Assembly (NCBI GenBank): GCA_965202585.1
Contig: OZ241828.1
Location: forward strand, 56,916,001-56,980,000
Direction of reading: 5' to 3'
DNA from: Thalia democratica
Lineage: Eukaryota
Length of the DNA stretch: 64,000 bases
Shown here: one piece after another, positions 4,171 through 45,832 of the stretch
Layout: each line of letters begins with the position of its first letter
Numbering within the stretch: the first letter of the stretch is position 1
Translations under genes and position numbers: made by a program
Notes under the pieces: generated by a model
What the model was told of the DNA's origin: nothing
The model's input: the letters and a program-made list of their open reading frames with translations, nothing else
The model's database searches: none

Positions 4171-4220
4171 TAAATATATATATATTGTAAGTTAATTATA
4201 AATAAAATAATATTTTCCAG

Positions 4221-4431: not shown

Positions 4432-7354
4432 ACTATCTGCGCCCATTGTGAAGCAAATATCGACGTCTAGTGAATTTTTTCCCTGTGTGGTTTTTCTTTC
4501 AACAAATTATGTTTTAGGTAATTTCCCTCCGTTGAGAATCCGTTCATTTTGTGTTTTTATGCTGTGAACTTTGTTGAGTTGAAAGATTATTAAGTATCTG
4601 GTCTCTGTGTTATATTTGTTTACATTAAATTTTAATTTCTGATTTCTTACAGTAAATACGTTTACATTGAAATATTATTTTTAAAGTTTTAGGCAGCTTA
4701 ATTATTGTTTTGTTACTTTAATAATAATTATTGAGTATCTGGTCTCTGTGTACTTTTTCTTTATATTAAACTTGTATTTCTGATTTCTTTCAATAAACAT
4801 GTTCACATGAAAATGATGTTTGTTTTCATAAGATTTGAAATATTTTTGAAAAAAATTAAGTTGTTTCAACTTGTTTCAATTTAGAACACAACCATTGTAT
4901 GATGCTGATGAGCACAAATACCTTGATATGCAACTCTAAGTTCATTAAAAGCTTCTTAAAGCGTGAATAACATTTTCTTGTTAATTATTTTAAATAAAAC
5001 CAAGTTACTAGAAAATGTTAGATAAATTTGTAGATAAAAACCTTAAGTTTTAGTTGAAAAACATATTTTTTCTATTAACGCATCGCTTAAAATGAAAGAA
5101 GTTAGTTGATTAAGAAAATTAAAAATATATTTGCCGTTTTTTTTCTAACTACAGAAACGTTAAAACGAAATCAAATAAGTATTTTAGCTTAATTAAATAA
5201 GCAAAGTTTAAAAAACAAAAATGCAAATACATTGAAAGCAAAAAAAAAACATAGGAGTATATATCCAAGTTTTAAAAGTAGCCTTTGTTAAACAATATAT
5301 TGAAATAAGTTATAATTATTTAAACTTAATCTTTGTTTAGAAAATGTTTACTCTAATATACAATTTAAAAAACTTTGTTTTTTCTTTCTTCAAATAAATG
5401 GAACACTATCAAGTCATTCTAAATCAAAAATTTCATGTCCACTTATTTCAATGTGTATGAGATAAAAGTGTACAACGTATCATAGTTGAAACAAGCTAGT
5501 CACTTTACCGCGTTGATTTTACATAAGAATCATAAGAAAAAAAAATTTGTTATTTACTGTTAGTTTTTACAATTGAACGTTAAAGCAAAACACGTGATAA
5601 CATAAAAAAAGTACAAAGCATTTAAAACCATTATATTACAAAAAAAAGTAAGTTAGCATCTGTTTTATTGATTTAAAAGTGTGTATACATTTTTTTTCGA
5701 ATATAATTCGGACAAATTTGGATTGCAAAACGTAAAAAAAAGTTAAAATAAATAAATGATAAAACATTTTTAATGTGCATTTTCCTTTGTTGTGATTAAA
5801 ACTAGATGCTTGCTTAATTTTTTCGTGAATAAACTATTATAATTGCTGTTTTTTTAATAAAGAATTAAATTTAAGTCTTATTAAAAATAAATAGTTTCTT
5901 TTCGATGTTTTTAAGCTGTTGTGAGTTTGAACTAAAGCAAAATTATTAAAAGTACTTTCATTTATTCTTTGAAATAAAGGTTTCGTTAAACAAAACGTTT
6001 AAAAAGTATTTATATAAAATAAATCGTTCAACAGGTGCCAACTTTTTTTTTTCCAAAAATAGTGAAGAGTATTTAAATTTTTTTGATGCTGCAGATGTTT
6101 GGTGAAATAAAAAGAGTTTGCGTTTTTAATATTTTAGCACAAAAGTGCTTACTAAAAGTTTATGCTGAAGAAAAATCTGAACTGTTTTCTTTATCCTATG
6201 AATTTTAATACTGATTGTTTGTTTAACTCAATGTGTGTTGGTTTTGCTAACTGTTTTTACTTTCGCTAAATCTAGTGTGTTTTGTGTGGCGACATTTAAG
6301 CTATTAGCACGTATTTACTCATTTTAGTGTAATTTGAATTTCTTTTGCAATGTAATTTAAAATAATATTTCAAATGAACTTAAAACATTTAACTCAAGGT
6401 AATCTTCTTAAAATCACTTTAAAGATTTTCTTTTCTATGGTTGTAGAAGATTTTTTTTTGCATATTAACTGTAAATAAAAATGTACGGTGTGCGTAAGAC
6501 ATCTAACGGACACTTATTTGACCCGAAATTGTAAAAATTAATTGTAAAGATTCTTACTTAAAAACTAAGTCAAAGAGGTAGAACAAATAGTGTTTAGCTA
6601 ATTAACTTGTTGCTTGAGTTAGTTAAATTTTAAGATAACTTTGAGGTCTTCTCAATAAAAAACTGCTTGTAATTAATACCAATTGTACAGTAAAACATAA
6701 TGCTAAGATTAAAATGCTAGAAAAAACTGCTCTTGTTATTTAATGTTTTGTTCTATGATGTATCTACAATTTACGGGAGACTTAAATTAAATACTAGATT
6801 TTCGTGAAGTGTTTTATAGCTTAAAGAACTTGTGTAAAACAATTTCAACAGGTAACTTATTTATCAAATACCGTAAAACGTGTTCTTTACTGTTTATTGA
6901 ACGACAAAAAAGTACGTTTAAATTTTTTGGACCTGGTGCAAGAAAATATCTTTCGTTTATCGAGTCGCACACCACGGATACCTTTGATATCATGGATAAC
7001 GTCTTGCCCAGGACCGACTTTAAACTTTTTATTTAGTACCCAGTCAGTAGATTTTAGTAAACTATATAAAAAGTTCCAACGAAACATTTTATTAATTTTA
7101 AAGATGAAAAGTCGTACAAAAATGAGTTTGCGTTGAATTCAAAAGAAACATTATATATCATTTATATAATGCTATTTTACATACTAACTATGTTTCTTTG
7201 TACCCTTATGATATGAGGCGATGCTTTATGACCGACTGGTGGATAGTTCGAAACCTGGTAAATTTATTTTTTCAAAACGCAGAACAGATCAACAAAATAC
7301 TTGATAAGAAAATCACATGAGCGGTTTCATACGTCATAAAAAAACTCTAGGAAC

Positions 7355-17520: not shown

Positions 17521-18574
17521 CTGTTACAGAAGTTAAATCTGATGCAATTTATAGTTAGCTGTAACAAAGAAGGGAATATTGACTTACTAAAAATAAGTAT
17601 TTTTACCGTATTTAAAAATATTAACATGTTTGTTATTATTGAATTTTTTTTTTTTGAAAAAGTTTAGATATTTAACAAAAGTAGTTTCGTATTTTAAGTT
17701 CAGTTTTAACCTTGTGCTAATAGTTTTTTGTAAGTTAACGTACTTGACTCAAAATTAAATGTAAGAGTAAAGCACTAGACAAGAAGTCTTTTCAGCTGAT
17801 GTGCTGTGAATATTAAGTACACAAATTTTGACAAGTATGCAGTTTAGTACGCACTTTTTAAACAAAACACATTTTTGAACCAAAATAAAAACTTTCTGTC
17901 AGGTTTCCTTTTTGTTTAGACTAGTAATTCTTAGCTAAAAAAATCCTTTCGAGTAACTGCTGTGTTCAGAATGTGTACTTTAGCAAAAAACAACTGTAAT
18001 ATTCAATACTAGAAAGATTACATACACAACTATTTGTTCAAAAAGGGTTTGTTCAACATGCTTCTAGGAAAAATTAAGGAATTTTTTTAAATTAGAAATG
18101 ATAGATTCTAACATTTCGACCTAGAAAAAACAGACTATTTGTCATCTTGAAGTCAAAAAACTAACTTGGCCTCACTTGGCCTGACCCGTTGTAACCCTGA
18201 CCACAGCTAACGTAACAAATCTCAATTGAGCTGACTCGAAAACCGAGTTGCATAGCTTGAAGCCTAGTGTGTTTGTATAAAACTTTTGCGAATATTTCTT
18301 AAACAAAAATAAAACGGTCTCAAAAAATAAAAAGACCTGCCCGTAACTAGAAAATCAAAACAAATGCAAACCTTTCAGTGATCGTTCTCAAATACTGTTA
18401 CGTAGAAAAGTAAACTCTTTATTTTATAATGTTTTCCGGCAAGTAGTTTGCTTAAAGCAATTTAAGCAAACTGTTTAAAACTGTTTAAACTGTTTAAAAC
18501 TAGTTCACGTACGTGAACAGACCGTTTGTGTTTTTTGTTTTTCTTCAAATGAATTCTATAGACTACTGTTCATG

Positions 18575-19240
18575 ATAGGGTATAGTTTCTACTATACCCA
18601 CCTTGTTACGCCTTTAACTTAAAAAGGAGGTTTTGGTGGGCGGTGAGTGCATCTTAGTTACTAATGACTATTTAGTTTCTATAGATTTTTAAAATCAAAC
18701 TACTTACAAATCAAACAAATCAGCGGTTCCGCTTTTCGAAAATAATTTGAGGACAAAAACACCTAAATGTACGGGACATAATGACCTACTACTTTTCGTA
18801 GCTTAATTAAAAATATACGGCTATACACCACCATAACGGGTTAGGAAATGGTATCGTTGATTGTCGTTTCTGTTTCACCTCCCTCTGTTTTGAATTAGGT
18901 CACCTAGATTTCTCTTATATTGTTTGTATCTTTATACAAGGGTCTCCAATCCTTTTCTGAAGAGGTACCTTTTGTAAAATTTCTTACTATTTCACTTTTT
19001 TGGAAAGATATTTATTTTTAATAATGTTTATATTTTACTTGTAGTTAACGTATAACCGCGTTGGCTGGCACATTATATTCCTCACTTAATTTAAGTTATT
19101 GACTATTTTAACTAGTTAAGAGTTGAATTTTTATATACTAGCGTTTATATTATTGTAAATGAAGGTAAGACAACACTTCAAACTTTAAGATTGTTTCTTC
19201 TAAATTAATATTAATAAATCGTGTTACACTACATACACTA
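18575..19240 (-). rRNA. rrnS: mt small-subunit rRNA pseudogene (NUMT)
   Basis: GTGCCAGCCAACGCGGTTATACG (~19050-19072), AGGATTGGAGACCCT, GCACTCACCGCCC, GGCGTAACAAGGT, and terminal hairpin GGGTATAGT-AGAA-ACTATACCC. The 5' end is approximate. Confidence 0.9.
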
Positions 19241-19274
19241 AGGTTTTATTTTATACACTCACAAATGAAATTGT

Positions 19275-20130
19275 AATTTATCTGAAGAATTTAACTCACG
19301 GTGTTAAACGGAATCATACGAAATTTTATACATCTATAAGACGAAACCGGGATAAAGCTGAACGACCACATAAAAAATATATTAGAAACAACAATATAGA
19401 TAGGGAAATAGAAATGAACCATTGATTTTGTATGAAAATATCTGGCTAATTGTCAACAAGCTAAGTATTTCTGAAGAAAAAAATAAATAAAAATTTTCAT
19501 CTTCCATATTCTAGATTAAAACTGGACACTAATTCGCTCTCTCCTTCTGCCAGATCAAATGGAGTTCGTCTTAATTTTATGATTCAAGCACCATTAAAGG
19601 TCTAGTAAGAAGAAGACGTGACCAAAGTTGTTTAAACTTATGTGGTTATTGGTGGTTCCAATTCAATTTCAATCCCTTATTCTCCTTTTAAAAAACATCA
19701 TTAATAATTGAAGAAAAATTTCGTAACTTAATATAAGCCTTACTACGCGTACATCCCTTGTAACACTGTATACCGATCTGTAAGAAAATCTGAGAAGTAT
19801 GAAAGTAAGAGATAACAGGGATAAGATACAAAATATTCTAAAGTATGTTATTTCTACATGTACTTATAGCTAAAGGTATTGGGCAGCTTGCGATAAGTAG
19901 TACAGTTGACAGGATTGGGGAAAGAGAGTACAAGAGAGCAGAAGTTAGAGTTAAAGCAATTCTTTATTTTATATTAACTTCACCCTGTCCGTAACACACT
20001 GGATAACGCTTCAAGGTCTTACGACGTTCGGTCTTTAACGAGATCAGCATAATCTTAAAACTGTGTGTTCTATTAATACTAGAAACGAAACTCTAAGACT
20101 CAATCTAAAATAAGTTAATACAATAATCAT
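19275..20130 (-). pseudogene. nad1: nad1 pseudogene (NUMT)
   Basis: With AGR=Gly: MIIVL..[62 protein letters not shown]..VW. Confidence 0.92.
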
Positions 20131-20131
20131 T

Positions 20132-20196
20132 ACAACGTGTATACTAATTTACGAAGTGGAATCTTAGATCCCATGTTTAAACCTCAGCAAACGTTG
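20132..20196 (-). tRNA. trnL: mt tRNA-Leu(TAA) pseudogene (NUMT)
   Basis: Acceptor CAACGTT/CACGTTG (6 of 7 paired). Anticodon arm TGGGA-tcTAAga-TTCCA. Directly precedes the nad1 ATG. Confidence 0.6.
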
Positions 20197-20202
20197 CCGA
20201 CA

Positions 20203-20262
20203 GTTCTTTCGGTATCATCCCACCAGATCGTTTTCAAATCGTTCACACCCTAAGGGAAAAAC
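20203..20262 (-). tRNA. Possible mt tRNA-Ser(TGA) pseudogene (NUMT)
   Basis: Acceptor GTTTTTC/GAAAGAA, imperfect anticodon stem around ttTGAaa, T arm GGT..ACC, minimal D arm. Confidence 0.4.
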
Positions 20263-20269
20263 TTAACTA

Positions 20270-20950
20270 TAGAAGGTTAGTTTCCTTTCTAACATACTAT
20301 TTTTTTGAAAGATAAAATCCAGTCTGATTTACATCGACCTTAACTCAACTCACGTAAAGAATTAAAAGGCGCACAAACTTACTAAAAGTTAGCTGCTGCG
20401 GTAATTGGTATCTTTAAGTCAACAAAGAGGTCGTTTATTTCTTTCAGCTACGATCGGAGTAAGAATAATAGCGCTCTTAACCCCAGCGTTAGTTAGTTTT
20501 TATTCAGCTAACTAGTTGGATACTTTTACCACGTATTTTGTTACAAATTTAAACTTATGCTATATAATAAAAAGCGTCCATCCCAGAAAAAATATACTCT
20601 AATGACTTGATTAGATAGTATTCAACTACCTTGGGTCTTGTCAAATTATTCTAGGTTTTTGACAAGAGTTCAAAATTATACTTGCGCAATAGAAACATAA
20701 AGACAAACTAATAATAGGCGAATTTGAATGGCCTAACTATGGCATATTTCTTCCGATTAAGCTTAAGCTATTCACGTCTTTTTTATAAAAATCAAAAAGT
20801 TGTGTGTTTAGTACACATACGTTTGTAATTAATGAGTTGTTTTATTACCGTATTATATAGTTGTACTTGGTGTATACACTACCTACTCCATTACAAATTA
20901 AAAATAAACTATTTTTAACGGAGTTAAGAGCTGACTCCTTTAATTAGGCT
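20270..20950 (-). rRNA. rrnL: mt large-subunit rRNA pseudogene (NUMT); 5' end uncertain
   Basis: Domain V motifs GGGGTTAAGAGCGC, CGACCTCTTTGTTGACT, CCGCAGCAGCT and TACGTGAGTTGAGTTAAGGTCGATGTAAATCAGACTGG align by eye to the mt 16S consensus. Confidence 0.88.
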
Positions 20951-21629
20951 TATTCTAGGTATCATAAAACGCGATTTAGCATGTAACAACTTTTACACTT
21001 TTCTTTACTCAATTGAATGCATTCTTTTGAAACTATCCGCAGTTCAAAGTGCAAAAGATCCTTTTATTTCGAGTATACGGAGATCGTACCCCAGTAAAGT
21101 ACAAGAAAAAGAGGGTAAGGAATTCTTGTTGTAACGTAATAAGCTTGACTGTAATTTTACGGAAAAAATCGTTTTAAAATTGAGGTGATTTATAAAATAA
21201 TACTTCCTGTTGCAATCAAAGGAGTTAAAGAAATACGGAAGAATTTAAAGGTACTAATCTTATTAAAACAAATAGCTTAAAAAAAAAGCTTCTTTTAGTT
21301 TCGTATATGAGCTACTTACAGCTAGGTCTAGTAGCAATAATACTATCGTAATAGGGAAAATATTTATTTATAGTAACATTAAGACATTTCTAGTAACATA
21401 ATATAGTATGCTTAAGTCTAAGTTAAGACCTAATAGGATTAATTTCTCCTAAAGAAACTGGATTCATTTATCCTACCTTAGCTGTCCAAAGAACTACAGT
21501 AGCTCACTTCTGTGGTTTCAAGACGACGATTAAATAATCTATATGAACTTTCGTCTCAGCTGATTCGATACTACACCATTATTAGCTGTAGCAGAGCTAT
21601 TTTACAAATAGTATCAACTTACACTATTA

Positions 21630-22578
21630 CCATAGTGAAAGCTTTACTGAAGTATGTTAAGCTAAATAGTCTGGATACAGTTAAAAGGGTTCCTCTACAG
21701 GTTTTCTTCTAAGTACTCTTAATAGGAGACAAATAACAAGGAATTTAGAACATATTAAATTTCTTAACGGAGGTATGGAGAGGTTCTTTCTTGAGACTAG
21801 AATGATAATGAGAGCCACAACACTAAGTAGTATTAGAATCAGCCTTCTTATTTTTGAAGGCACTGCACGAAGAATCGCGTAGAGTATTAAAAAGTACCAA
21901 TCTGGTTTAATAGGTGTCGGAGTAATTATAGGATTATTTTTTTAGGTTTTTAGTTTCTGGCATTAGGAATAACGTTATCGTTAATAGATTACAGAATTAA
22001 ATGCTGTAACGAGTCTTTCCCTCTAAAATGAGGCCAAAATGGAATATAGTAATTGTTACGATCTCTTATATGCTCTCTAGATATTAGCATGTGTAAAATT
22101 AAAATATATATTAAAGAGAAGGAGCGATCACTATTCTTAATAAAGAGAGTAAAGAAATCGTGTTAATGTAGGATGTCTTACAGTAAACCTCTCCATACCC
22201 ATTCAAGGATATCTTGTCTATAAGGAAGAGCTCTTAGAATCCTTTTAATCACTGTTGCTCTTATGCAGCTCTTACAGTTATTAAAAGAATTACAGCCATT
22301 TGCAACCTTATTGGAAAATTGGCCCTCCGTCTATAGTATAGACTTCGAAGCATGTATACTTAAGTTAGGAGGAGTATTGCTTGACTTCTTACAATGTGTA
22401 TTCTATAAACCTTAGGTCTACTTCACGTATAATGACTCTACACTAGTAAAAGGACTAATACCTACCCTAGCAAAGTAACGAAGGCTAAGTAAGATTCTCG
22501 AGACTAATTGTGAAGTGTAGAAAAGTCAATTAAAAGCCTAAAATTTCAGAGATAATTAATACCTTGAGGTAAAGGCAT
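21630..22578 (-). pseudogene. cob: cob pseudogene (NUMT)
   Basis: [70 protein letters not shown]. Frameshifts, and loss of the GYVLPWGQMS segment. Confidence 0.93.
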
Positions 22579-22582
22579 TTTA

Positions 22583-23223
22583 TTAGGCAGAGTTAGGTGT
22601 TACTGATTCAACTTTAATCGGCATGTAGAAATGACCTACTTTACATAGTTCATAAAATACTCAAGGACGTGGGAAACTGGTAGACATCGCGTTTAGACGT
22701 CCTGGTTCGGCGTCACACTTAGAAAAAGTTCCAGGTAAAGAAAATGCATGAAGCACATCATTAGATGTAATATAGAACGTAGTATTTTTATTTTTATCGG
22801 AACTACCCTACAATTGGCAATTTCTAGTAAGTTAGGATTTCTTTTCCTTTTAACGTTTTCTAAACGGCTTATATACAGTTAAGCTTTATTACCCTCCCTA
22901 TCTTATAGTTCTATACCATTGGTAAGCGGTAACTGGTAAGTTGTAGCCAATCTGTGAATCCGGATTTCGCGTGTACAGGATGACTAGTCTAGGACAATAT
23001 AGTGCCACTACTGTGAAGCAAGTTGAATCAAATATTCTTCTTTCTGCAAAAATTAACTGTATATCGGTTATAGATTCTCCTCTTATAGGATCACTACAAA
23101 TAGTATAGTAACAAGCCTTCTACAGATTAAGAAAAATAATCAAAGAATAAACCTATTATAAAGCGGTTTTTCCGAATTCGATAAGGTATCGTGGAATTTT
23201 ATCTGCAAAGAAGGATTAAACAT
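22583..23223 (-). pseudogene. cox2: cox2 pseudogene (NUMT)
   Basis: MFNPSLQMKFHD, AYQWY, ITSNDVLHAF, CDAEPGRLN, RP.VFYELCKVGHFYMPI. The GQCS part of the CuA motif is missing. TAA at 22583. Confidence 0.9.
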
Positions 23224-23224
23224 G

Positions 23225-23285
23225 TTTCACCTGCTAAACAGCTACTTCTTCCCCAGACAAGATATGATAATTTCACTAAGGTAAA
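23225..23285 (-). tRNA. trnP: mt tRNA-Pro(TGG) pseudogene (NUMT)
   Basis: Acceptor TTTACCT/AGGTGAA, D stem GTGA/TCAT, loop tcTGGgg, T arm GCT-gttt-AGC. Ends 1 nt before the cox2 ATG. Confidence 0.6.
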
Positions 23286-23344
23286 TACGATACCACCTTA
23301 AGAGATTCAACTCTTTTATTAGTTTTAAATAATAAGGTATTGCC

Positions 23345-25200
23345 TATACTAGAAGGCGTTTTAACTGAAGCATACGAAGATAAATAGCGTATAGATTATC
23401 CTCAGAACAACATTCTGAGGTTAAGTTTAGCCCTATGAGACCAGTTTTTAATTATGTATCACTCAGATTTCTTTAAAAATTAAATGTTGTAAAGAATTCA
23501 ATTCTTAAAATCACTCGTTTCAAATGTGTTAATTGTCTAATAGTGAAGCGTTATAAATTGCTAGGTAGTTATTAAGGTCTCAATTAATAGCTAGACCATA
23601 AGACAAAGTGACATAAGTAAACCTTACTGCGACAAATAGAATAAAACTTGAAGTTCATTTAGCATTATTTACTCTAGCAGGAGATATAAAAGAGTAATTT
23701 AAGAAGGATACAGGAAATGAAATAATTATATAGCCATGCAAGAAAGATGGTAATGGTGAAATTTTCGTATCGGAATAATGTCTTTTTAAGATTAGAAGAA
23801 CATACTCAATAACAAATCTTACAGAGTTGCCACTCGTTTTTTCAAAATTTTTCCAGGTTTTTCAAATTTCTTCCAGGTTTTTAAAAGTACACATTTTTGG
23901 GTTTATTTTTAGTTTAAAGTTAAATTTAAGGTAAAAAACAGTGTTAATTAGTATAAATTAATTGAAAAGATACTGTAAATTTACTTAAAATGTGATTTTT
24001 CATAAAAAATTTTTGGTGATGACAAAATTTTTTATCTATATGATAAATTTTTTAAGTCAAACCGAAGTTTTACTACTGAACATGTTAAAATTCTTAAAAA
24101 TTCCAGGTTTTTCCAGGTTTTTTGTTCAGAATTCAAGGTTTTTCCAGGTTTTTTTCAAAATTTCTTAAATTTCAGGTTTTTCCAAGTTATTTTTGCCTAA
24201 ATTGTCAAATTCCAGGTTTTTCCAGGATTCCAGGTAAAGTGGTAACCCTGATCTTAGTCTCACTCAAGATAATGAGAAAAGTACTGTTTTTACTATTATA
24301 GGCTAAGCAGAATCTAATATGATGTCAATTGCAGTCTCTTTGAAGGACCTGAGTCTTACTAGAGGTAAGGCTGCGAGACTAACCAGTAGCATAGTAAAAA
24401 TATTACCTATTTGCTTATGCGTGTACCTAAGGAATCTACGCACATCTTGCCCGTACATTGACTGTGTCGTAATTCTGTTGAAGACTTTACTACAGCGTAG
24501 AAGTTATATGCAAGTATATAACGTCATATTCACCTATATAGATTCAAATAAAAAGGAATCCTACGGTACAGACTGTCGAGCAAGCGACCCGACGTTTAAA
24601 CACGTAAGTCCTTAAGACTTTAAAGGTTACCCTTATAAGCCTAGCAACTAACATTAAGTTATAACACCTACAGTCTTTTATGTGAAAGCATAAAATTACT
24701 CTAGCTAGAACTAATGTACTAGAGTGAAGTAATCACTAGTAGGAATAAGACTGTAGGAGATGTCTCTAATATGAGTAGGGATGGCGGAACTAGAAATAAG
24801 TAAATACCTCAAACGTGACTTGATAGAAGCGTCACTACAGCCAAGAAACGAGCCAATTGACGTCTTCTTCATCAGCTTACTAAAAGGTATGAACTGATTC
24901 TAATAAATTCTCAAAATATCAAAAACCCATCCTTAACTTCGTTATAGATAGAAATAAAGTTGATGATGAGAAGAACCTGATTAGTAAATAAAATTGATGT
25001 ATATTAGACTCTGTGGCCATTTATCACAGAATGTACATGATCAACAATGTAAATCAACAATGTAAATACAATACAAATTGATGTATTGACCGATAGAGAT
25101 AATGTATCAAATTTAAAATAAAGGTTAGGTTGCTGCAGGCACGTGGCTTGGTACGTATACTTATATGCGAAAAAACTTGTTTTTATTTCAGCTTAAAAAG
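23345..25200 (-). pseudogene. nad5: nad5 pseudogene (NUMT), split by a MITE
   Basis: LYFKFDTLS, FWEFIGISSYLLVSWWGGR, LLHSSTLVLAGV, QDVRGF, SLAALPLVGLGSFKE. Both ends are approximate. Confidence 0.88.
23822..24250. mobile_element. hAT-related MITE with 6-bp TSD inserted in NUMT nad5
   Basis: TIRs CAGAGTTGCCAC / GTGGTAACCCTG. ATCTTA is duplicated on both sides. Subterminal TTCCAGG repeats. Confidence 0.9.
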
Positions 25201-25775
25201 ACTCTGCTTTCTTAGCTTTAAGTATTCATTTAAACTTAGTTATGCACTCCTGAGAGATAATTTCGACATGTATGTATTCTATTTAGCGCGTTAAAGCTTT
25301 TAATTTGACAAAAAGCTGCATGCAAATTTGATCCTAATCGAAGCTGTAGCTTCAAAAATCAAAATCATAAAATTTTATGTTACAAAAATTTGCATACTTG
25401 TTGTTACTATTGACTACGTTAAATGTTTGATTTATTGAATATAAATGTTTTTGAGTTAAATTGTGATTTTTTTATACTTATTTTTAATGAATGTTTTCTG
25501 GGTTTACACAAGTGGCAACACAAAAAGAGTCGTAGGGGGTGTGGAGCAAAATAAATTGCCTTGTATACACTTATCACTCGTACTTCAACATTCCACTTTT
25601 AATGTATTAACATAACTGCATAGTTTCAGATTAAATTCAATAACATTAGAGGTAGCTGTGTTCCCGCTAGGACGTTATCACGCGTCATTTCATATGTTTA
25701 AATTTTTGTAGATTCGTAACTTTTTTAAGCTAGCTACGTCCCTGGGTTGCTGTATGAAGTGTAATAAAATAACAT

Positions 25776-25838
25776 TGTAATATTACGTTACCGACATGTT
25801 CTTTAGAAGAGAACAAGTCTTAATTATCTTAATATTAC
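25776..25838 (-). tRNA. trnG: mt tRNA-Gly(TCT) pseudogene (NUMT), the AGR-decoding tRNA of tunicates
   Basis: Perfect acceptor GTAATAT/ATATTAC. Anticodon arm GTTCT-ctTCTaa-AGAAC. T arm ATGT-cggta-ACGT. Confidence 0.85.
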
Positions 25839-25904
25839 GTTGACTGGGTACATTTATCGCTTTAAAGTTGACAACTTTATGTACTCGGCTTATACTACAA
25901 CCAA
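25839..25904 (-). tRNA. trnD: mt tRNA-Asp(GTC) pseudogene (NUMT)
   Basis: Acceptor TTGGTTG/CAGTCAA, D stem GTAT/GTAC, anticodon arm TAAAG-ttGTCaa-CTTTA. Confidence 0.85.
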
Positions 25905-25906
25905 AT

Positions 25907-25972
25907 TGGTTGAGATACTCTTACAGTACTTGGAAACCCGAATTTTCCAGTTCTTTTTAAACTAACTTAATT
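25907..25972 (-). tRNA. trnR: mt tRNA-Arg(TCG) pseudogene (NUMT)
   Basis: D stem GTTT/GAAC, anticodon arm GGAAA-atTCGgg-TTTCC, T stem GTACT/AGTAT. The acceptor (AATTAAG vs CTCAACC) pairs only if three A were originally G. Confidence 0.65.
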
Positions 25973-26021
25973 TTATTGATACATTTATTTAATAAAACAT
26001 TACTTGCTGTGTAAAATCAAA

Positions 26022-26746
26022 TTAAAGAGCTAAGTAGTAAGAAAAATAAACGAAAACTCAAACTACGTCTACGAAGTGTCAGTAAATTACAGAACATAAA
26101 TACACAGGGTGACTTTCTGGGGTTGAGTTCCTACTAAAGACACGTCCTAAAGCGTATATTAGAAAGAATACTCTTACTCATACATGTATTCCATGAAATC
26201 TTAAAGAAGAAAATAATATTGATCTACAAAATTTCCTTGCCATTCTTAAGGAGAACGTGCTAAACTCTACTCATTGTACTCTAAAGAAAACCACACTTAA
26301 GACAATAGTTATCACTAACCTCTTAAAAGTTATTTCTGTAGACCCAAATCTTAATCTCATATGAGAGTATGTTATAGTTACAAATGAGCTAAGTAAGAGA
26401 GCAAAATGTATTAACCTATGGCCTATGGCTGAAGGTATTTCATTTTTTGCTACAATTCTACTATTTCTCACAGCCGGTGCTCATATGCTTTTAGTAAACC
26501 AAGAAAACAGCAGTGAAAAGAAGGCAAATGCCTCTGCTGCGACTAATCAGTAAAAGGATACCATATAATGTGAACGAGTTAATTCTCTTACCATTCTCGC
26601 TTTATCCATGAACCTTATTTCTGCACTAAGGAACCACGTGTTTAATACTAAAGGTATGAGTATTAACAAAGTACCCACTCCTTTCAGTAACATGATTAAC
26701 CTTTTTCTAGCACAAAAAAGGGTCCTTGAAACTAATAAGGGTGCAT
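26022..26746 (-). pseudogene. cox3: cox3 pseudogene (NUMT)
   Basis: MHPY, CGSMLFSSLGFHGMHVWVG, IYWHFVDVVWVFVY, TAA at 26022. Confidence 0.95.
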
Positions 26747-26787
26747 GAGAATATCTACTAAGAAATGTCTGCGGTTTGCAGTTGACA

Positions 26788-28263
<1,476 letters not shown>

Positions 28264-28269
28264 ACACCT

Positions 28270-28334
28270 AAAGAAGAGACCGTAGGTATGGATAGATTAT
28301 GAACTTAGTATCTTGCTGTTAGATTACTCTTCTT
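28270..28334 (-). tRNA. trnM: mt tRNA-Met(CAT) pseudogene (NUMT)
   Basis: Perfect acceptor AAGAAGA/TCTTCTT, D stem ATCT/AGAT, loop ttCATaa, T arm ACC-tac-GGT. The anticodon stem is imperfect. Confidence 0.75.
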
Positions 28335-28344
28335 GTATACACAT

Positions 28345-29630
28345 TTTAGTTTAATTTGGTTAATTTAAATTAGTAAAATAAATGAGTGATTTAGTAAGAG
28401 ATATAGTATGTATAGTTCTACACCGGTAGTGTATTGTCTTAATAGACTTCGATTACTATTTTGTTATAGACAAACTAATTTAAGTTATGCAATCGGCTAA
28501 TAGAATAAACATGGATCTTAAACCTATAACAGTTAGACTAGAACAAAAAAATCTTCGTATTCGTGTGTAATATTGCTCATAGCTTCGTAGTAGTACAGTT
28601 AGTGTTACTACAATTTAAACTCTGAAGTAAGTATAGCTGTTAAATAAAGCATTTAGAATAGATAGTTCTCTTCAAAAAGAAAACACTGGAGGTAAATCTG
28701 TTAGTATGAACCTTAATAGTATTGTATAACACCAAGTAAATTTATTTATTTTAGCAGGTAAACAATTTTGACTATAAGTTAGCACTGTATTTTACCTGCT
28801 AAATGGAAAAGTGCAGGGCTCGAAAGACATTGTCTTAATCTAACTAGACAAGCTTCTGTAAACCTTTAAACTGTGTACGTTAGCCGCCTAACACAATTTA
28901 AAGTTATATGTCTAACAAAGCAGTAAGCAAGAGAAACTTTAGTCTCAAATATGTCCTTATAATTAAGCTGAATAACGTAGCTTTAATAAATTTGCTACTT
29001 AAGAGCAGGTTTCTAAACAGAAAAATTAGATAGACTAATCTAACCTTTAAACTTAATCTTGCAAGAATTATAGACAGGATCGTAGGAGCCTGTACATGGG
29101 CTTTAAGCAGTCAATAATGCAGCCTATACACAGGTAGTTTAGCAAGTTTCGATATTAAAATTAGCAACTGTAGTACTGACTTCTGCGTTTGCCAGAAATC
29201 TTTCCCTGTACAAACAAGATAATCTGGATGATTTTCCTTTTCTGTACTCCCTAATAGTGTACACTGATAGTGTAGCAGACAGAACTAAGATGTTGTAAAC
29301 AAGGCATATGTTTGAAACAATTTATCTTTTGAAATATGAATTAACCTAAATCTTAACGTAGTTCAACAAAGCATTAAATCAGCAATAATCTACACGAAAA
29401 GAAGTTCTCTTGTGTAAAACGCAGCCAAATGCAAGAAAGCCACTAAGAACATACAGACAAGTGATTTCGAGGAAGTTATTGATTTGTAGCCAAGTAAAAG
29501 AAATGTTCCTGTTAAGATCACTGGTCTATTGATTTTTAAAGAAAAAATTCTGGGATAATTGGTTGTGGTAGCCAAAACTTTTGTAAAAAACAGAGGAGTT
29601 AGGCACAAAAAGAACAATTGGACATTTTTG
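28345..29630 (-). pseudogene. nad4: nad4 pseudogene (NUMT)
   Basis: [37 protein letters not shown] matches the nad4 KxPxYGxHxWLPKAHVEAP motif. Upstream AFYTGELLFV also matches. Ends are approximate. Confidence 0.9.
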
Positions 29631-29649
29631 GCATTATAGTAATAACGAT

Positions 29650-29980
29650 AAGTATTTTATTTCATTTCTTTAAAGAAAAGTAAGTAAATAGATATAAGAT
29701 AAAAACGCCATTACTCTATAAAAAAAAATGAAAGAGTAAGCATATAAAAGGTAGGAGGTGAAAAATTTCAAAGTCAAATACAATGAAGGACAAAGCTAAA
29801 GTAAAAAAATTTAACAAATAAGTTACTTTAGCTGAATTTGACTCGAACCTACATTCAAGTATAGTAAGTTCTGTAGAATTTATATTGTATTGCACTGCTA
29901 TCGTCAACAGTTTAAGTACAAATATCAGAATTAACATTAGGATTAAATATTGCAGCATTAATAGTTCCATAGTGAGCATA
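29650..29980 (-). pseudogene. nad3: nad3 pseudogene (NUMT)
   Basis: LECGFES (G=AGG), NFFTLALSFIVFDFEIFHLLPF, in-frame TAG. Confidence 0.88.
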
Positions 29981-29989
29981 TAGAGCTTA

Positions 29990-30230
29990 ATCTTCACAAG
30001 ATTATCTTTTATTAGGTCTAAACTAAACTGTTTCAGTAAACTAAGAGCATCGCTCAAAACACTACCAGTACAAATAAAAAGACCAATAAAATAACCGACC
30101 GCGATTCTGGATCGTTCGAAAAATTATCATTACTTTTCTGATTGCGTTAGATTAAATTTAAACTAAATAGAGCGACACTATTTCAAACACTAATTAAAGT
30201 CTCATAGCCTTTAGTATACCCTGTAAAAGA
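29990..30230 (-). pseudogene. Possible atp6 C-terminal fragment (NUMT right edge)
   Basis: Weak by-eye similarity (ETLISVWNSVAL; SNAIGK; VFWAMLLVY) to atp6 C-terminal helices. Confidence 0.3.
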
Positions 30231-32706
30231 CTTTAAAAATCTTGGAAAAAAACAGCAAAGCCAGATTAATGACATATAAAAACTATTTAGGAATTTTTGT
30301 CTGCCTTTTCACTTAACAGTTAATAAAATTTTGGTATGACAGGTAAAAAACAGAGTCTCAATAAAAACAAATTAAAATTTTTGGGCATTATTTATACAAT
30401 AAAAACCTTTATTTATATATAAACATTTTGCTTGATGCAATTAAAGCAAACTGTGAAGGGTTTAAGTAGGTATCATCTTTTAAAATCAGCTATTATATTT
30501 TATGGTTAAATGTTTTATTATTAAGGTAAACAAAACTTTGAAGCCTGAATGATTGTAATAACATCATTTGTCTGTTTATGGTTATAATCTAACTATCTAT
30601 AAAGTTTAGGTTACACATGTATGATACATCCATTTAAATTTATTGAAGCAAAACGAATTGATAGCACATCATTAAATTTTAAGTAATAAAAATAAGCCTT
30701 TTTTAAACCATAGACTAAATTTCTTAACAAACATCTAAACTTGTTTTCATGGTAAATTGCAAATGAATAACATTTTTAGAACTCAAACTTTATTTATAGA
30801 AAACTGTTAATTTAAACAAGTGCTTAAGTGATTAAGTTACGGACTATTTGCTTATGCAAAAATTTAAAACATCGACCATTTCTAAAGCTGCATGAGCTTA
30901 ATCAATTTTAATATAATATGTTTGATTTAATACTAAAATCGTTGTTATTTTTAATGCAAATAATGAGGGACTTTGATTAAATCCAAAATATACTCAATCC
31001 ACCAACAGAAATAATAAAAATACCAATTAAATGTGTGTTTTGTTTCTGTGTAGAATTTTGAAACAAGTTTTAAATTTTTAGAACAGTATTTGCATGATTA
31101 AGAACCTTATTTTTATCAAAAAAAGCTCTGAAACAATGATGATGAACAAGGTTATTGATGGAAGAATTTGATATGAAATAAATAACAACTTTATTTCTGA
31201 TGATTTATATTTTCAGTGATTATAAAAGAAAAACATTGAGATATCATTTAACCGATATTTTTTTTTATTTTTAGGTAAAACTTCAGGTTACAATTATAAT
31301 TTGAAATGTTCTCCAAAAACGAAATTAGTTTTGCGCGAATTGGACTCACCTGTTACAGATTATTCTAGTGTATTATTGCAAAAAGTTCTTTAAAAGTATT
31401 AATTTAAGCAAAACTTTGAAACGCGATTATTTCAATTATGTTATGCAAATAGAACAGTTTCCTTAAAAACTTGTTGAAGCATACATAGACCTTTTTGTAA
31501 AAGTTTTAGTTACAAAAAAAACAAACTTTTAAGCCTAAGATTAATTAATTATAGAAACTAAGAAGCGCGATGAATGAAAATAAAACTTCTAAAACTACTT
31601 TCAAGCTGAATAGCTTTAAGTCGCAGTATTTAATTTTCTTAAGAACTGCATATTTTCAAAATGTGAGTTTTATAGAAATTCGAAACACGAGCTTTTACCA
31701 TATATATTATTAGTGCAAACAAAACTTTAAAGCATGAATGATTGTAATAAAAACATTTGTCTATTTATGGTTATTACCTAACTAGCTCTAAAGTTTAGGT
31801 TACAGATGATTAATTTATTATTTATTACATGGCTAAGCTTATTTGCAATATTATACATCTGATCTCATATTACAAGCTTTACTTAACAAAATGTAAAATT
31901 AAAACACAGTTTATTTTTAATTTAAAAATTTCAAAAGACATTTAATGGACACCATTCTTAAAAAAAATTCCCTATAAAATACTTTAAGACCACTTGATAA
32001 AAACCTATAAAAAAAATTTGAAATAACATTAAAAAAATGCATACTTTTTTATACTTGATTTACTAAATTCCTGAAAACATTAAGTTTCGGACTTACCATT
32101 TCATGATCCAGATTCACAGTTGTATGATAGAATAAACTTTGCGTTTTTTGGATTTACCTTGTTCAGTCCTTTAATGTCTGTTTGCTTCTGAAATTGTGGT
32201 AGTTACTTTAATTTACGTTTTGTATTTTGAGCTTTAAAAGAATTAAGGTTAAAAATATAAAGAAACCATTTAACTTATAGCAATAATAAAATCATTTGCC
32301 ATATGCAAGTAAATAAGGTGAGATTTTTTCAAGAAGTGAGTTATATATAAAAAATTATCACAAGAAAAAAATATTTTATAAAATTAATAATAAAAATATT
32401 AAGTGCATGGCTATCAATAACTAATAGTCTGGTTACTTATAAAACAGCTAACACATACAAAAAGCAAGTTAAAAGTTAAGTAATGTTTAAAAATTATTAT
32501 ATGAACGCGATAACTTTTAGAATTTTCTTAATCAGTTAAAAGGTTCATTTTAATTTTTTAACCTGTTCATTGAGGAGCTTCATAGGAATAAAAAAGTGTG
32601 AGTTCTTGCACGAAAGTAATAGACTGAAATGAGACAAAAAGAAAAAAGTCAGTTTTGAACACAAGCTGGCGCTGTTTAATCGAAAATATTTTTATATTTA
32701 AGTTAC

Positions 32707-35926: not shown

Positions 35927-36066
35927 NNNNNNNNNNNNNNNNNNNNNNNNNNNNNNNNNNNNNNNNNNNNNNNNNNNNNNNNNNNNNNNNNNNNNNNNNN
36001 NNNNNNNNNNNNNNNNNNNNNNNNNNNNNNNNNNNNNNNNNNNNNNNNNNNNNNNNNNNNNNNNNN
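35927..36066. other. Assembly gap (140 N)
   Basis: Run of N. Confidence 1.
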
Positions 36067-37090: not shown

Positions 37091-37214
37091 AAAACTAGTA
37101 TTATAATAAACACATAAGCATTAAATAACTATCTTAAAGCTTGATAACTAACTAATTTACTGAAATGTTACTCTAAAAAAATTAAAAATTAAGCTAAATA
37201 AGCTGTCACTTAAA

Positions 37215-39390
37215 TATGCTGAAGTGGTACCAATTTACAAGTCTGGTAAAAAAAGTGATGTTAATAACTATAGACCTATTTCTCTTATGTCTCCTTTTTC
37301 AAAAATTTTGAGTCCTTAGTGTGTGAGAGGTTGAATATTTTTTTTTTGTCTAATGATGTTTTGCATAAAAATCAGTATTGTTTTAGGAAAGATAGTACAA
37401 CTGAGCTTGCTGTGAATCAGATTGTGGATGAGTTGATTGAGGCTGGTGAGAAAAAGTTAGTTAATTGTTCTGTTCTTTTAGATTCAGCAAAAGCATTCAA
37501 TACGGTAAATCATGAAATACTCTTGTCAAAATTAAAAGGTTATAAAGTTGAAGGATCTATGTTAAATTTACTACAAAGCTACTTATATAATAGAAGCCAA
37601 TTGACTGTTATCAATAATGTTGTGTCTGAGCGTGAAATTGTGAATGTTGGTATACCGCAAGGTTCTTGTTTGGGTCCTTAATTGTTTCTTGAGTATATAA
37701 ATGATATTTTTCTTCTACTGAGATTAACATGAGATTGTTTGCTGATGATGCCTGCTTAAGCTACCAACATAGTGATCCTGCTTGTGTGAACAGTGTTATT
37801 AATGAAGAACTGAGAAAAGTTGATGTATGGTTGCGTGATAATAAACTTTTTATTAACTATTCTAAAACTAAATTCTTGCTTTTTAACAATACTTCTAAAA
37901 AATGTGATTTTAAAGTAAATATAAATGGATTTGCTCTTGAACAGACTGAAAGTATAAAATATTTAGGTGTAGTTTTGGATGAAAAACTGAATTGGAGGGC
38001 TCACTTAAGATGTCTCAAATCAAATCTGTCTAAAAGTTGTTTTGTGTTGTCAATATTGAGGTACTATTTGGATGTGAGTACACTTAAAATGGTGTATTAT
38101 AGTTTGTTTTATCCGCATATTCAATATTGTATTTCTGCTTGGGGTGGTGCTGCTGAATGTTATTTGAAACAAATTGTTACTATGCAAAAAAGGATAGTGA
38201 GGTATGTTTGTTGTGTGCCTGCTTTGACTCCAACAAACCCACTGTTTGTGAAAACTGGTCTGCTGAAATTGAATGATGTGTATAAATTGCAAGTTTGTAA
38301 ATTGATGCAGAATAGTATGACTGGATTTGATGTTGAGCATAAAAGTTTTACTCTTGCTAGTTCTCTTCACTCACATAATACAAGATTTTCAAAAAAATTT
38401 AACTTCATAACTATAAGACCTAGAACAAGACTTGGCCTAAACTCCATTAGGTATTTGGGTCCAAGGTTTTGGTCTAGTGTCCCAGAAAATTTGAAAAGGT
38501 TAAAAAAAGATAAGTTTAAATGCGGTTATAAAAATTTTCTATAAATTTGCTACAAGAAGTGAAACTTGAGTGCTTATAATCACATGCATGAGTATATTGT
38601 TTTATTGTCTTATTTTTTTGTGCATTTGTGTATAAACTAGATTAATTATATATTTTGTTTTCCTTGTTGTTTTCTGTATAAGTTTAAGTTCAAATATTTT
38701 ATGTTATTTAACTTATTTTTAATATATAAAGGAACATTTCTGTTGAGATTTTTTATTTTTTCTAATACAAGTTTGTTAAGAGAGAAATTATTTGTCAAGT
38801 TTTTGAATATTGATCAAGATTTGTGTTAACTTAATGCTAGCAATAAATTACTTAAGATTTTGTTATAGAAGTTTTTTGTTTTGTAGCTATTGTTTTTAAA
38901 TTACACTGCTTAATGGTATATTGCTGCTTAAATTTTCAATGGCTAATTGTGGAATCACTTGGTGGCAGTGATATCATAATTGGATTGTTGCTATTGTTGT
39001 TTTGTTCAGAACGTCGGAAGCACTTGCTTGGGGATTTGAGCTTCAGGATTTTCCCAAACTTAGTGGTTTTTAGTGTTGAGATTTTAACCTTGTGAGTGTT
39101 TGCCAAATGACTTGTCACTAGGGTTTTTTTCAATAAAGGGTTAGGATTAGTTTTTTATTTTGGTTAGTTAAAAGTTCTACTTTTTATTTATTTATAGATT
39201 TAGTTTTATTTTTTTAATTAAATGGTGAAATTTTTTCTTAGTAAATTTAAAGATAGGACAGGTGGAATAACACGTGATGAGCTCAAACTCACTTGCATGA
39301 CCTTCAGAAAACGTTTATCGTTGTAGAGAGGAGAGTGAGTTAATTCTGATGTTTTTCTACCTTAAAAATAAATAAATAAAATAAATAAAT
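37215..39390 (+). mobile_element. 5'-truncated CR1/L2-group LINE (RT, frameshifted) with 3' UTR and (TAAA)n tail
   Basis: VVPIYKSG..NNYRPISL, LDSAKAFNTVNHEILL, GIPQGSCLGP, LFADD, IKYLGVVLDEKLNW. The tail is AAAATAAATAAATAAA. Confidence 0.93.
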
Positions 39391-41937: not shown

Positions 41938-43437
41938 TAATAATGTGTTACTTTAAATTTTAAAACTTTTAGACTTTTTTTTGTTTAGTAAATTATAAAA
42001 ACAATAGTAGTCCAATGACTGTACCTTTAAGCACTTCTTCTATACTATCACTGGTTGATACATATCATTAAAAACTAGTTTTTTTTTCTTTCAACTTAGT
42101 ATGGTTCTATTAATTTGATGTTTTTCTTTGTACCATAGTTTTATGACTTTTCTAATGAAATTCTTCTATCCACACAGTAAAAGCCTTACTCAGATCCAAC
42201 AAAACATTATCAAAGTAGAACAATGCTCTTCGAAAAAAGTACCAAAAAAATTATATAAAACACAACATTTTTCAAGGTAGTTAAAATTTTTTCTCTTGTA
42301 GATAGCTTGTAGACAGTGTCATCTCTACCTAATGCACACAGTTTAAATAGAAATTATCTTGATTCTAGGTTATAACCAATACATAGGTTTTATAAAAAAA
42401 CATTATTATAATTCGAGATTGACTCTATTTCAACGTTATTAATAAAAAGTTCAAACAATTTTTGTTGTTATACTTACAATTTTTTTTTGTATCTAGTAGT
42501 ATTGTTTTGTACACAGTTGAAATTTAAAAAAATGCTACTGTGCTTAGGTGCACTTCACAATGTGCTTTACTAGCCTAATCTAGCTGTACCATCTAGTTAG
42601 TAACCATGAGAAGAAATTGTGATTCTTTTTTGTCTACAAACACTTTTTTTTGAAACATGTAAATTACTATGTTTGAAATAGTTTCTATTTAGTCAAAAAA
42701 AGTATTTTTTTAAATTAAAAGTTTAAACAGTCTTTTTATTTTTCTATATGCAAAAGTAGACTTTTTATGTCTGCTTACTTTTCTTTTAAGTGTAACTGTA
42801 GTTATAGCTGATAATCAATTCTTTTGAAACTTTTTTTTATGCTCAACAAAAGTATCTCATCTATATGTACAGTTGAGTTATCACACACTCAAGCCAACTA
42901 GTTTAAGTTTTTTGAAAAACGCAGGCCAACTCGCGCTAGTTATGATTTTTTCTCAAAAATATGTATAGTTTTTTTGAGTTTTAAATCAATATTTTCATTA
43001 AACATTAACTAAGTTGTTTATTTATTATTGTTTATATAAGTTTTCAAACTTGACCAATTGTTTTATTTTCTATAAGGAAGATATTTTTAAAAAACTAAGA
43101 AACTAAAGATATTTTATCTGATGAAAACCTTAATGCAGTTTCTTAATTTGTTTTCCTCATTTGTTTTAAAGTTTAAATGTTATGTTTTCTCAGAAATGTT
43201 TTTTTTTTATATGTTTTTTTCAATTTTAGGATTAGTATCTTAAAGACCTTTTTTGTTTTGAATCTGACATATATTTTTTTTTATTTTTAGATTTATCATA
43301 TTTTTATACTACTTCAAAACATAACCTGCCAGTCAACTTAAAAAAGTATTATTTTATTGAACTATAGATTTCTATAAACATATAAACAATTTTAAAAGTT
43401 TTTACAACATGACCTTCTACATAAGTCTTTATAAACT

Positions 43438-45031
43438 CAGGGTTGCCACACACTCAGGGAACTCAGGGAATCTCAGGGAATTTTCAAACTGTAGAAAATC
43501 TCAGGGAAACTCAGGGAAACTCAGGGAATTTTGGCATTTTTCTTTTAACTCAGGGAAACTCAGGGAAGTTTTGATTTTTTCTCTAAATTTCAGGGAAGTT
43601 TTTGAAAATCTCAGGGAAATTTTTTTCTAGATCTAGAATGAGGTTTAGTTAATCCAGTTTCAATATTTTGTTCAAAAGTAGTAATTTTTATTATTAAAGT
43701 GGTTATTTAGAATTTTTTTAGCCTTGCGGCTAGTTCTTCAATATTCTTAGTATTCATTGTCTTAGTATTAACATTGTTGTATTAACACTCGATATCCCAA
43801 GCAAGTATAAAGATTTAACAAGAGTCCTTGAGGCTGTTTTTGTGCTTCACAATGGCCAGGCAAGTGTTGAACGAGGCTTTAGCTTAAATAAGGAAGTAAT
43901 ATCAGCTAATATGGGAGAGATGACAATAAGGTCCCGAAGAATGATCAAAGATCATCTATATATGCAAACAGTCTAGAACAAAGCACAGTTGAACTAAGTT
44001 CTGAATTGTTAAAATTTGTAAAATCTTCTAGGGCAACCAATATTTGGCATATCTTGAGCAACAGCGCTTTGCTAAAAATGTTCCAAATAAAGGTGATGCT
44101 TTGAGCAAGTTAAGAGAACAAAAAAGTAAACTTACAAAGCAACTCAAATGTTTGAATGAAGACTATGACAAATATACTGCAGATGCCAACAAACAGTCTG
44201 ATTTAGAAGCAATGAAAGAATTATTAGCAAGAAGAATAGCTGCTAAGGAAAACGCAAATAAACTTGAAAATAAAATTAAAACTATTGATTTAGAAATTGC
44301 ATACTTAAAAAAACAGTATTAAGATTTTTTATTAGGTAATATGAAATTGTTTTAAAATCAAAATTATGTTTTCAGTTATTTAAAATAGATTGTGTATGAA
44401 CATCTAAAAGACATTAAAAAAAATTTAATTTTAGATTATTTTGTATCAGTTGTTAGGTATTAAGTTGTACCTTGATATGAGATATTTCTTTAGCTATTTC
44501 TTTAAACTTTCTTTTTGCAGATTTTTTTACAATAATGTTAAGCTTTTAAGTTTTATTTACTGCATTCAGAACAGTTGCTAGGAAAGACATACAAGTCATA
44601 ATGAAGTTATTATGTATGCATTTAAGTGAGTTCTTCATGTGAAATTATTACTATAGTATAATTAAATTTTGTCAATTAAAATGTCAAACAAATTAAACTT
44701 TTTTCTTTTATGTAGAAAGTTAACTAACAAGTTTACACAAAGTTGTGCAAAAATTTAGTTTTTAATTTTTAATTGGTTTAAACCTTTTAAGATTGAGTTT
44801 TTGAAAACAGTTTTTTTCATAAATTTAATGCAGAAGCATACACATACAACCTTCCTTTTATTATTAAAGAAGAAAAATGAGAATGAGGTATTAATAATTT
44901 GTGTTAGAAGAGAAAAATTTTTTTTTTAAGATTTGAAAGATACTCAGGGAAACTCAGGGAAATTTAAGGTTACTCAGGGAAATTTTTGGTCACTCAGGGA
45001 AGATTTTTTGGCTCAAAGAGTGGCAACCCTG
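43438..45031 (+). mobile_element. Internally deleted hAT element (6-bp TSD) retaining the transposase C-terminus
   Basis: TIRs CAGGGTTGCCAC / GTGGCAACCCTG. TAAACT on both sides. CTCAGGGAA subterminal repeats. 43800-44322 reads VFVLHNGQASVERGFSLNK (hAT dimerisation region) and then the 44044-44322 coiled-coil ORF. Confidence 0.92.
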
Positions 45032-45832
45032 TAAACTGTTAAATGTTCTTGAATTCTATATTAGTAATGATTACTGAATGTGATATTATTTTTGAGTTAA
45101 GTCAATGTTTTTGAATTTGAATTTTTTTCAAATGATATCCAGTGAAAATGAGAACCTGTTACATGAAAATTCTTAAACATTAATAGCAAATTACGTTTCA
45201 TAATTTAAGTACTATTTATCAGAGTTTTATTACCAATATTAAATTAGGGGACTTTTTGTCTAAAAACTTCTAATCAACAAAGAAAAAAAAAAAAAAAAGT
45301 TTATAAATATGGTGTAAATGTTATAGTTAGTAAACTTTGGTGCTAGTTTTAATAGTTGTATTAATAAAGTTTGACAAATGACAATTTTGAAAATCCAATT
45401 AAGTATACTTCAACAAAAGTAGAGCAACCAATATTTAGCCCATTTCCTAGAAAAAGTTGTCACATCTAACCCACTACTAGAAAAGTTGCCAAAGTCTATT
45501 ATAAAAAAATCAAAAAAGTTATATAAACAATAATTACAAAATAAAGACAAAAGTAATTGGCATTGTATCATGAAATGAAATAAGCAAACACTAGACCTAT
45601 AAGAATTTACTTAGAAGTTATAATATTTTTATTATAGTTTAAATGTTTTCAGACTTAGTTGTTATACAAACTCACCACGAAGTAACTTAGACCAATATTA
45701 CAAAATATATTTTAGTAAATATTAAAAGTAAGTTAATCTATTAATAAAAAAGGCCATAACAAAAATTTATTACAGATGAGAGCCTGTTTATAATTTTCAT
45801 AGATTTTAAACTTGATAAATCAAAACTAAAAA

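Follow-up and report, generated by a model that had tools for sequence, protein, structure and literature searches.

Nuclear mitochondrial DNA segments (NUMTs) are a well-known kind of object, and the closest analogue of the locus described here is a large NUMT that was amplified after insertion, for example the Numt of the domestic cat, which Lopez et al. are said to have described in 1994 as a 7.9-kb piece of mitochondrial DNA (mtDNA) tandemly amplified in the nucleus. Tunicate mitochondrial genomes (mitogenomes) are among the fastest-rearranging and fastest-evolving of all animal mtDNAs, and because they change so fast, the intermediate steps of a rearrangement have normally vanished by the time species are compared. 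In a literature search, no study devoted to tunicate NUMTs came up. We analyzed a 64,000-nucleotide stretch of the nuclear genome of Thalia democratica (the window, G000:C4:56916001-56980000; assembly size 801.8 Mb) that carries a ~12-kb NUMT at 56.93 Mb on the 101-Mb contig C4. The NUMT occupies window positions 18492/18513-30425 on the minus strand and holds nine recognisable protein genes, an atp6 fragment, rrnS, most of rrnL and 12 tRNAs, all on one strand (Table 1). An initial annotation, made from the sequence alone, had taken the region for a fossil, near-complete copy of a single-strand, tunicate-type mitogenome in nuclear DNA, and our analysis supports that description.

Pfam searches of pieces uninterrupted by standard-code stops gave matches to nad3, nad4/Proton_antipo_M, COX1 (three pieces), COX3, COX2, the C-terminus of cytochrome b and nad1, and the mitochondrial mode of ARAGORN placed trnH, trnM, trnD, trn(UCU), trnS(GCU) and trnL(UAG) on the minus strand; this mode was needed because ARAGORN in its standard bacterial mode and Rfam both returned no match in the NUMT region. 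The long open reading frames (ORFs) of the region are open only under translation tables 13, 5 and 4, where TGA is a sense codon. Pfam, ARAGORN and collinearity with the host's living mitogenome (below) thus confirm the series of mitochondrial genes on one strand that had been recognized at the outset, including the cox2-cob adjacency, which is kept in the NUMT.

A search of the whole assembly with the NUMT region identified the last contig, C1833 (14,120 bp), as a collinear, intact mitogenome with all of its genes on one strand. It contains intact ORFs for atp6, nad1, nad3, nad4, cox1, cox3, nad5, cox2 and cob, plus three further ORFs named nad2, nad6 and nad4L by elimination; Pfam searches of C1833 gave no confirmation of these three. 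The ORFs of C1833 are intact under the ascidian code only. In cox1, AGR codons occupy the glycine positions that are invariant in the GGFGNW and DPxGGGDP motifs; read with the standard code, these sites become RGFRNY and DPVRRRDP in place of the GGFGNW and DPAGGGDP of other animals. ARAGORN also found trnG(UCU) and trnM(UAU) in C1833, the former in the NUMT as well. The one-strand genes, AGR as glycine and these two tRNAs characterize C1833, as far as sequence features go, as a tunicate-type genome with the ascidian code. Searches with cox1 retrieved only marine-plankton catalogue proteins that differ little from the live gene, together with unrelated metazoans at ~50% identity. One further entry, P0007, is a 172-aa "COX1" that derives from ENA and was taken from a 713-bp contig. 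It shares 86% identity with the live gene, has unusual substitutions and a scrambled C-terminus, and looks like a NUMT or decayed copy within a public protein catalogue.

Sensitive alignment showed the NUMT to be collinear with C1833 in five blocks at 74-87% identity (Table 1), with per-feature identities of ~78% for nad4 and nad3, 79% for nad5, 87% for the rRNAs and 94-95% for some tRNAs. The NUMT runs unbroken over the arbitrary end and start of C1833, which is therefore confirmed to be circular and complete. The NUMT has the same gene order as the living mitogenome. Its source had been proposed to be highly divergent, with a possibly unrecorded gene order; the source is instead the host's own mitochondrial lineage, whose live genome lies in the same assembly, and because the NUMT is collinear with that genome its order is not new.

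The copy is decayed. Frameshifts disrupt every coding gene of the NUMT, with the live copy intact, and 23 in-frame stops under code 13 are distributed over all genes but cox3. Differences between NUMT and live genes amount to 13.4/9.1/34.3% at codon positions 1/2/3, a pattern indicating that most of the divergence arose in the mitochondrial lineage, under purifying selection, after the transfer, and that neutral decay in the nucleus accounts for at most ~9%. Contigs assembled from public runs (Logan) span the boundary between nuclear DNA and NUMT at 18513 in one sample (X1/X3), and contigs from two studies (X1, X2, X3) span a deletion junction specific to the NUMT (21093/4). The nuclear flanks of the NUMT are common to its paralogs. 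These observations confirm a real, old, decayed nuclear copy of host mtDNA.

Three further copies have the same flanks and junctions: copy B (C4:56.875-56.889 Mb), copy C (C4:56.843-56.847 Mb), which has a large deletion, and one on the unplaced contig C757. Over 2 kb of nad4-cox1, the paralogs are 5-10% apart and 19-20% from live mtDNA, and they form the tree (((A,C),B),C757), where A is the window copy and mtDNA lies outside. The duplicated unit measures ~30 kb or more. What had been proposed as a single insertion event is supported: there was one insertion, later copied by ~30-kb segmental duplication to at least four copies. A gap of 1,573 bp (mt 486-2058) in the window copy is also present in copy B. 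Because C757 keeps mt 527-2107, collinear and at 84% identity, the gap is a secondary nuclear deletion, and the original insert contained atp6, a nine-tRNA cluster, two small ORFs and all of rrnL. The paralogs have histories of their own: copy B has a 2.2-kb insertion within its cox1 copy (G000:C4:56883255-56885457), and the C757 paralog has a 3.3-kb insertion within rrnL (C757:34563-37888) and a deletion that fuses cox3 (mt 10277) directly to atp6 (mt 527).

The control region is present twice in the living mitogenome, as 311-bp repeats with 99% identity (CR1, 4616-4926; CR2, 6124-6434) that start in the last bases of rrnS. Each copy opens with a conserved hairpin, GGGTATAG...CTATACCC, and between them the two enclose a spacer, trnG(UCC), the nad2-like ORF and a degenerate trnH copy (6025-6098), which is 72% identical to the functional trnH just after CR2. 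To our knowledge, tunicate mitogenomes do not usually have a duplicated control region, and none has been described with one. The nuclear copies record a different arrangement around CR2. An independent, old NUMT (NUMT-D, C4:51325989-51327438; 74% identity), 5.6 Mb from the window NUMT, has the order nad2, trnH copy 1, CR2, spacer remnant, start of the nad2 tail and nad3, the second trnH being deleted. In the window NUMT, the nad2 tail lies upstream of trnH, and farther upstream come what is left of the spacer and the distal two thirds of the repeat up to 30425, an end that is 71% identical to NUMT-D over 342 bp (E 3e-49) and 65-69% identical to live CR1/CR2 (E 5e-11). At the protein level the nad2 tail has a local score of 67 (shuffle mean 50, maximum 66), and a protein-level search for more nad2 upstream of 30130 gave nothing above shuffled controls, that stretch being control region. 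The junction between spacer remnant and nad2 tail is the same in both NUMTs.

Because NUMT-D and the window NUMT share the CR2-spacer-nad2 tail arrangement, the genome that they left was duplicated already, its second copy lacking trnG and most of nad2 and keeping the nad2 tail. The living genome later lost the nad2-tail remnant, so that CR2 now adjoins trnH. The window NUMT and NUMT-D together constitute a fossil intermediate of tandem duplication-random loss; the polarity of the original duplication is one that we infer. The earlier suggestion that the NUMT preserves an ancestral state consequently holds for the degenerate nad2 tail and spacer between CR2 and trnH, since deleted in the live genome, and not for the order of the retained genes. 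A young NUMT on C1 (G000:C1:109459499-109461170; 93-95% identity) reads nad1-trnI-rrnS-single CR-trnH-nad3. Elsewhere on C1, a very young NUMT (G000:C1:28104889-28107142; 96-99% identity) contains cox2-cob-trnS, trnF-trnL and the start of atp6; mtDNA thus continues to be transferred to the nucleus. About 40 more short NUMT fragments are scattered over the chromosomes.

Both ends of the window NUMT map to the same control-region coordinate, with a possible terminal overlap of 13-27 bp. A 28-bp direct repeat, whose copies are identical at 25/28 positions and whose motif occurs exactly twice in the window (0 expected by chance), adjoins both ends in all paralogs and may be a target-site duplication. 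The ends first placed at 18575 and 30230 shift to 18513 (perhaps 18492) and 30425. The short AAACAGTTT array at the 3' side has grown in the window copy compared with paralog B. In the account we propose, a ~12.7-kb linear piece of host mtDNA would have been captured once into C4, probably by end-joining at a staggered break with fill-in of the staggered ends. The piece would have extended from ~position 90 of CR2 via trnH-nad3-nad4-trnM-cox1-cox3-R-D-G(UCU)-nad5-W-P-cox2-cob, and on through S-F-L-atp6-...-rrnL-L-nad1-I-rrnS, into the first ~95-118 bp of CR1, lacking only trnG(UCC), nad2 and the first trnH copy. Its source molecule would have represented an earlier step in tandem duplication and random loss, with the spacer and nad2 tail between CR2 and trnH. 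Insertion would have been followed by neutral decay, by ~30-kb segmental duplications that copied the NUMT and its flanks to at least four paralogs, by loss of the 1,573 bp in the lineage of copies A and B, and then by acquisition of two miniature inverted-repeat transposable elements (MITEs) in the window copy; we infer the order of some of these events. Taken as a whole (single capture of host mtDNA, decay, segmental copying and an earlier duplication-loss stage of the source), we consider this explanation very probable.

Several points weigh against this account. Because there is no empty site in the genome, neither the precise ends of the insert nor a target-duplication origin of the 28-bp repeat is proven: a search for the pre-insertion site with both flanks across the assembly matched only NUMT-bearing paralogs. 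Contig bridging covers the junction at 18513 and not that at 30425. The 310-codon ORF is nad2 by elimination only, with no Pfam match, and an attempt to date the window family against NUMT-D from nad3 codon positions had too few sites (355 bp).

Could the stretch have arisen through erroneous joining of live mtDNA reads to a nuclear scaffold? A mitochondrial contig of high depth is indeed present in the assembly, and there is partial overlap between a mitochondrial contig and the stretch at 18575-18609, but the stretch is 13-26% diverged from live mtDNA and full of stops, two nuclear MITEs lie within it, its junctions are common to three paralogs and its own deletion junction recurs in contigs of two studies; misassembly or contamination is refuted by these observations, and we give it practically no credence. 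The idea carried over from the initial annotation, that the NUMT reflects a genuinely distinct ancestral gene order or stems from another species' mitogenome, draws on the absence of trnG(UCC)-nad2 and on a nad2 tail beside trnH where the live genome has none. Every retained gene is nevertheless in live order, the C757 paralog has collinear sequence in place of the internal gap, the full nad2-trnH1-CR2 arrangement coexisted with the remnant, as NUMT-D shows, and identity to host mtDNA is far above that of the other cox1 sequences found (~50%). Live order, C757, NUMT-D and host identity largely refute this idea, which we regard as very improbable.

As to how the mtDNA piece came to end where it does, we favour capture of a linear fragment over a version in which recombination between CR1 and CR2 produced a subgenomic circle, without trnG-nad2-trnH1, that was linearised at one point and then captured. 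The circle would account for the coincidence of both ends at one control-region coordinate with its possible 13-27 bp overlap, and the young, independent NUMT on C1 (95% identity) has the structure expected of a CR1 x CR2 recombinant; however, breaks at one fragile site in both control-region copies plus capture of a large fragment give the same picture, and the C1 copy could have collapsed between its repeats after insertion. We therefore view the circle as a possible route, though the less probable one. Another way to lose the block between CR1 and CR2 would be nuclear recombination, after insertion, within an insert longer than unit length. Direct repeats of 311 bp favour such a collapse, and it is plausible for the young C1 copy, but the block absent from the window family belongs past the two ends of the insert and not within it, and nuclear flanks with the 28-bp repeat adjoin both ends in all paralogs, which makes this explanation highly unlikely for the window NUMT. 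More speculatively, the window family, NUMT-D and the young C1 copy, which differ in age, may form a time series of one duplication-loss event, with the window family derived from a circle opened at a specific control-region site and bounded by a 28-bp target duplication. We offer this combined scenario tentatively and think it rather unlikely; if true, it would mean that recombination between the two control regions is a standing process in this lineage.

In the gene inventory (Table 1), several assignments of the initial annotation changed. The segment marked as a possible atp6 is control-region sequence followed by the last 29 codons of the nad2-like ORF and trnH. Of two unassigned stretches, the one of ~0.5 kb is MITE-1, and the one of ~0.7 kb comprises trnS(GCU)-trnF-trnL(UAG) and the 5' 385 bp of atp6. 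Between rrnL and nad1, where a doubtful trnS and a trnL had been listed, trnL(UAA) is present and there is no other gene. The single MITE reported was borne out, and a second MITE (23822-24250), trnW, trnI and trnF had been overlooked. MITE-1 is flanked by an 8-bp target-site duplication, GGTTGCTG (25128-25135 and 25745-25752), and has imperfect 12-bp terminal inverted repeats; its empty site is present in paralog B and live mtDNA, and an assembly search found dozens of nuclear copies at 85-88% identity. It resembles hAT-type MITEs in its 8-bp duplication, short inverted termini starting CAGG, lack of an ORF and many dispersed copies, and we call it hAT-like, a superfamily call made by duplication length and termini only. 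MITE-2, which live mtDNA lacks, has terminal inverted repeats matching at 10/12 positions, TAAGAT flanks and internal AAACCTGGAA repeats.

Table 1 Features of the NUMT and its alignment to the living mitogenome (mt, positions in C1833)
Feature	Window position	Strand	Evidence or remark
28-bp direct repeat, 5'-end copy	30427..30454	-	possible target-site duplication
NUMT 5' end: 3' part of control-region repeat (from ~position 90) and spacer remnant	30150..30425	-	
nad2-like ORF tail, degenerate, last 29 codons	30042..30128	-	DNA alignment to mt 5927-6018
trnH(GUG)	29958..30033	-	ARAGORN; 87% identity to live trnH
nad3 pseudogene	29637..29957	-	Pfam, alignment
nad4 pseudogene, 7 indels and 4 stops	28483..29715	-	Pfam, alignment
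trnM(CAU)	28272..28333	-	ARAGORN, alignment
cox1 pseudogene, 82.7% identity, 9 indels and 4 stops	26791..28304	-	Pfam, alignment
cox3 pseudogene, one 1-bp deletion, 0 stops	26025..26791	-	Pfam, alignment
trnR, trnD, trnG(UCU)	25776..25970	-	ARAGORN, alignment
nad5 pseudogene, split by both MITEs	23364..25819	-	alignment
MITE-1, hAT-like	25136..25744	.	
MITE-2	23822..24250	.	
trnW, trnP	23225..23358	-	alignment
cox2 pseudogene	22586..23241	-	Pfam, alignment
cob pseudogene	21622..22599	-	Pfam, alignment
trnS(GCU), trnF, trnL(UAG)	21420..21619	-	continuous over arbitrary end/start of contig C1833
atp6, 5' 385 bp	21093..21448	-	21093/21094 is the junction of the 1,573-bp deletion (mt 486-2058)
rrnL, 3' ~920 bp	20199..21094	-	87% identity; large-subunit motif conserved
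trnL(UAA)	20131..20197	-	alignment
nad1 pseudogene, 7 indels and 5 stops	19254..20163	-	Pfam, alignment
trnI(GAU)	19179..19246	-	alignment
rrnS, complete	18610..19178	-	530-loop motif identical to live gene
NUMT 3' end: first 95 to ~118 bp of control-region repeat, with conserved 8-bp-stem hairpin	18492..18609	-	
28-bp direct repeat, 3'-end copy, short AAACAGTTT array before	18447..18474	-	
Alignment block	25747-30040		mt 10805-6437
Alignment block	24251-25135		mt 11776-10800
Alignment block	21549-23821		mt 14120-11771
Alignment block	21093-21548		mt 485-1
Alignment block	18513-21094		mt 4710-2059

Elsewhere in the window, high-copy dispersed repeats at 1-2600, 2601-4171, 37200-39390 and 43400-45040 have many genomic copies at 93-98% identity and probably represent transposable elements with recent activity. 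At 35927-36066 lies a run of 140 N, an assembly gap or a masked stretch.

The practical consequence foreseen at the outset, a hazard for barcoding, is supported: the NUMT cox1 shares 83% identity with its live counterpart, and the nuclear copies that bear cox1 at ~83% identity, at least four in number, can contaminate barcoding, environmental DNA surveys and mitogenome assembly of this species. Beyond this, the interest that remains in so familiar a kind of object lies in the fossil rearrangement intermediate and in the coincident end-points. Slower-evolving nuclear copies here keep an earlier state of the mitogenome and show that its duplicated control region arose via tandem duplication, with losses following step by step.

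Duplication-random loss with control regions kept alike by concerted evolution is described for birds, snakes and fish (for example PMC6278868, PMC7720580, PMC4430869). As in the duplicated control regions described there, CR1 and CR2 of the live mitogenome are 99% identical and enclose trnG-nad2 and a degenerate trnH, the NUMTs standing for an earlier stage; unlike in those cases, the intermediate is known from nuclear fossils in one genome and not from a comparison of species. With the cat Numt the window NUMT shares the single capture of a large, multi-gene mtDNA fragment, its decay into pseudogenes and subsequent nuclear amplification, and like it forms a slowly evolving fossil of a mitochondrial lineage and a hazard for barcoding. 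It differs from the cat Numt in its tunicate host with the ascidian code, in its amplification as a ~30-kb segmental duplication (four copies) and not as a tight tandem array, and in having both of its ends at one control-region coordinate.

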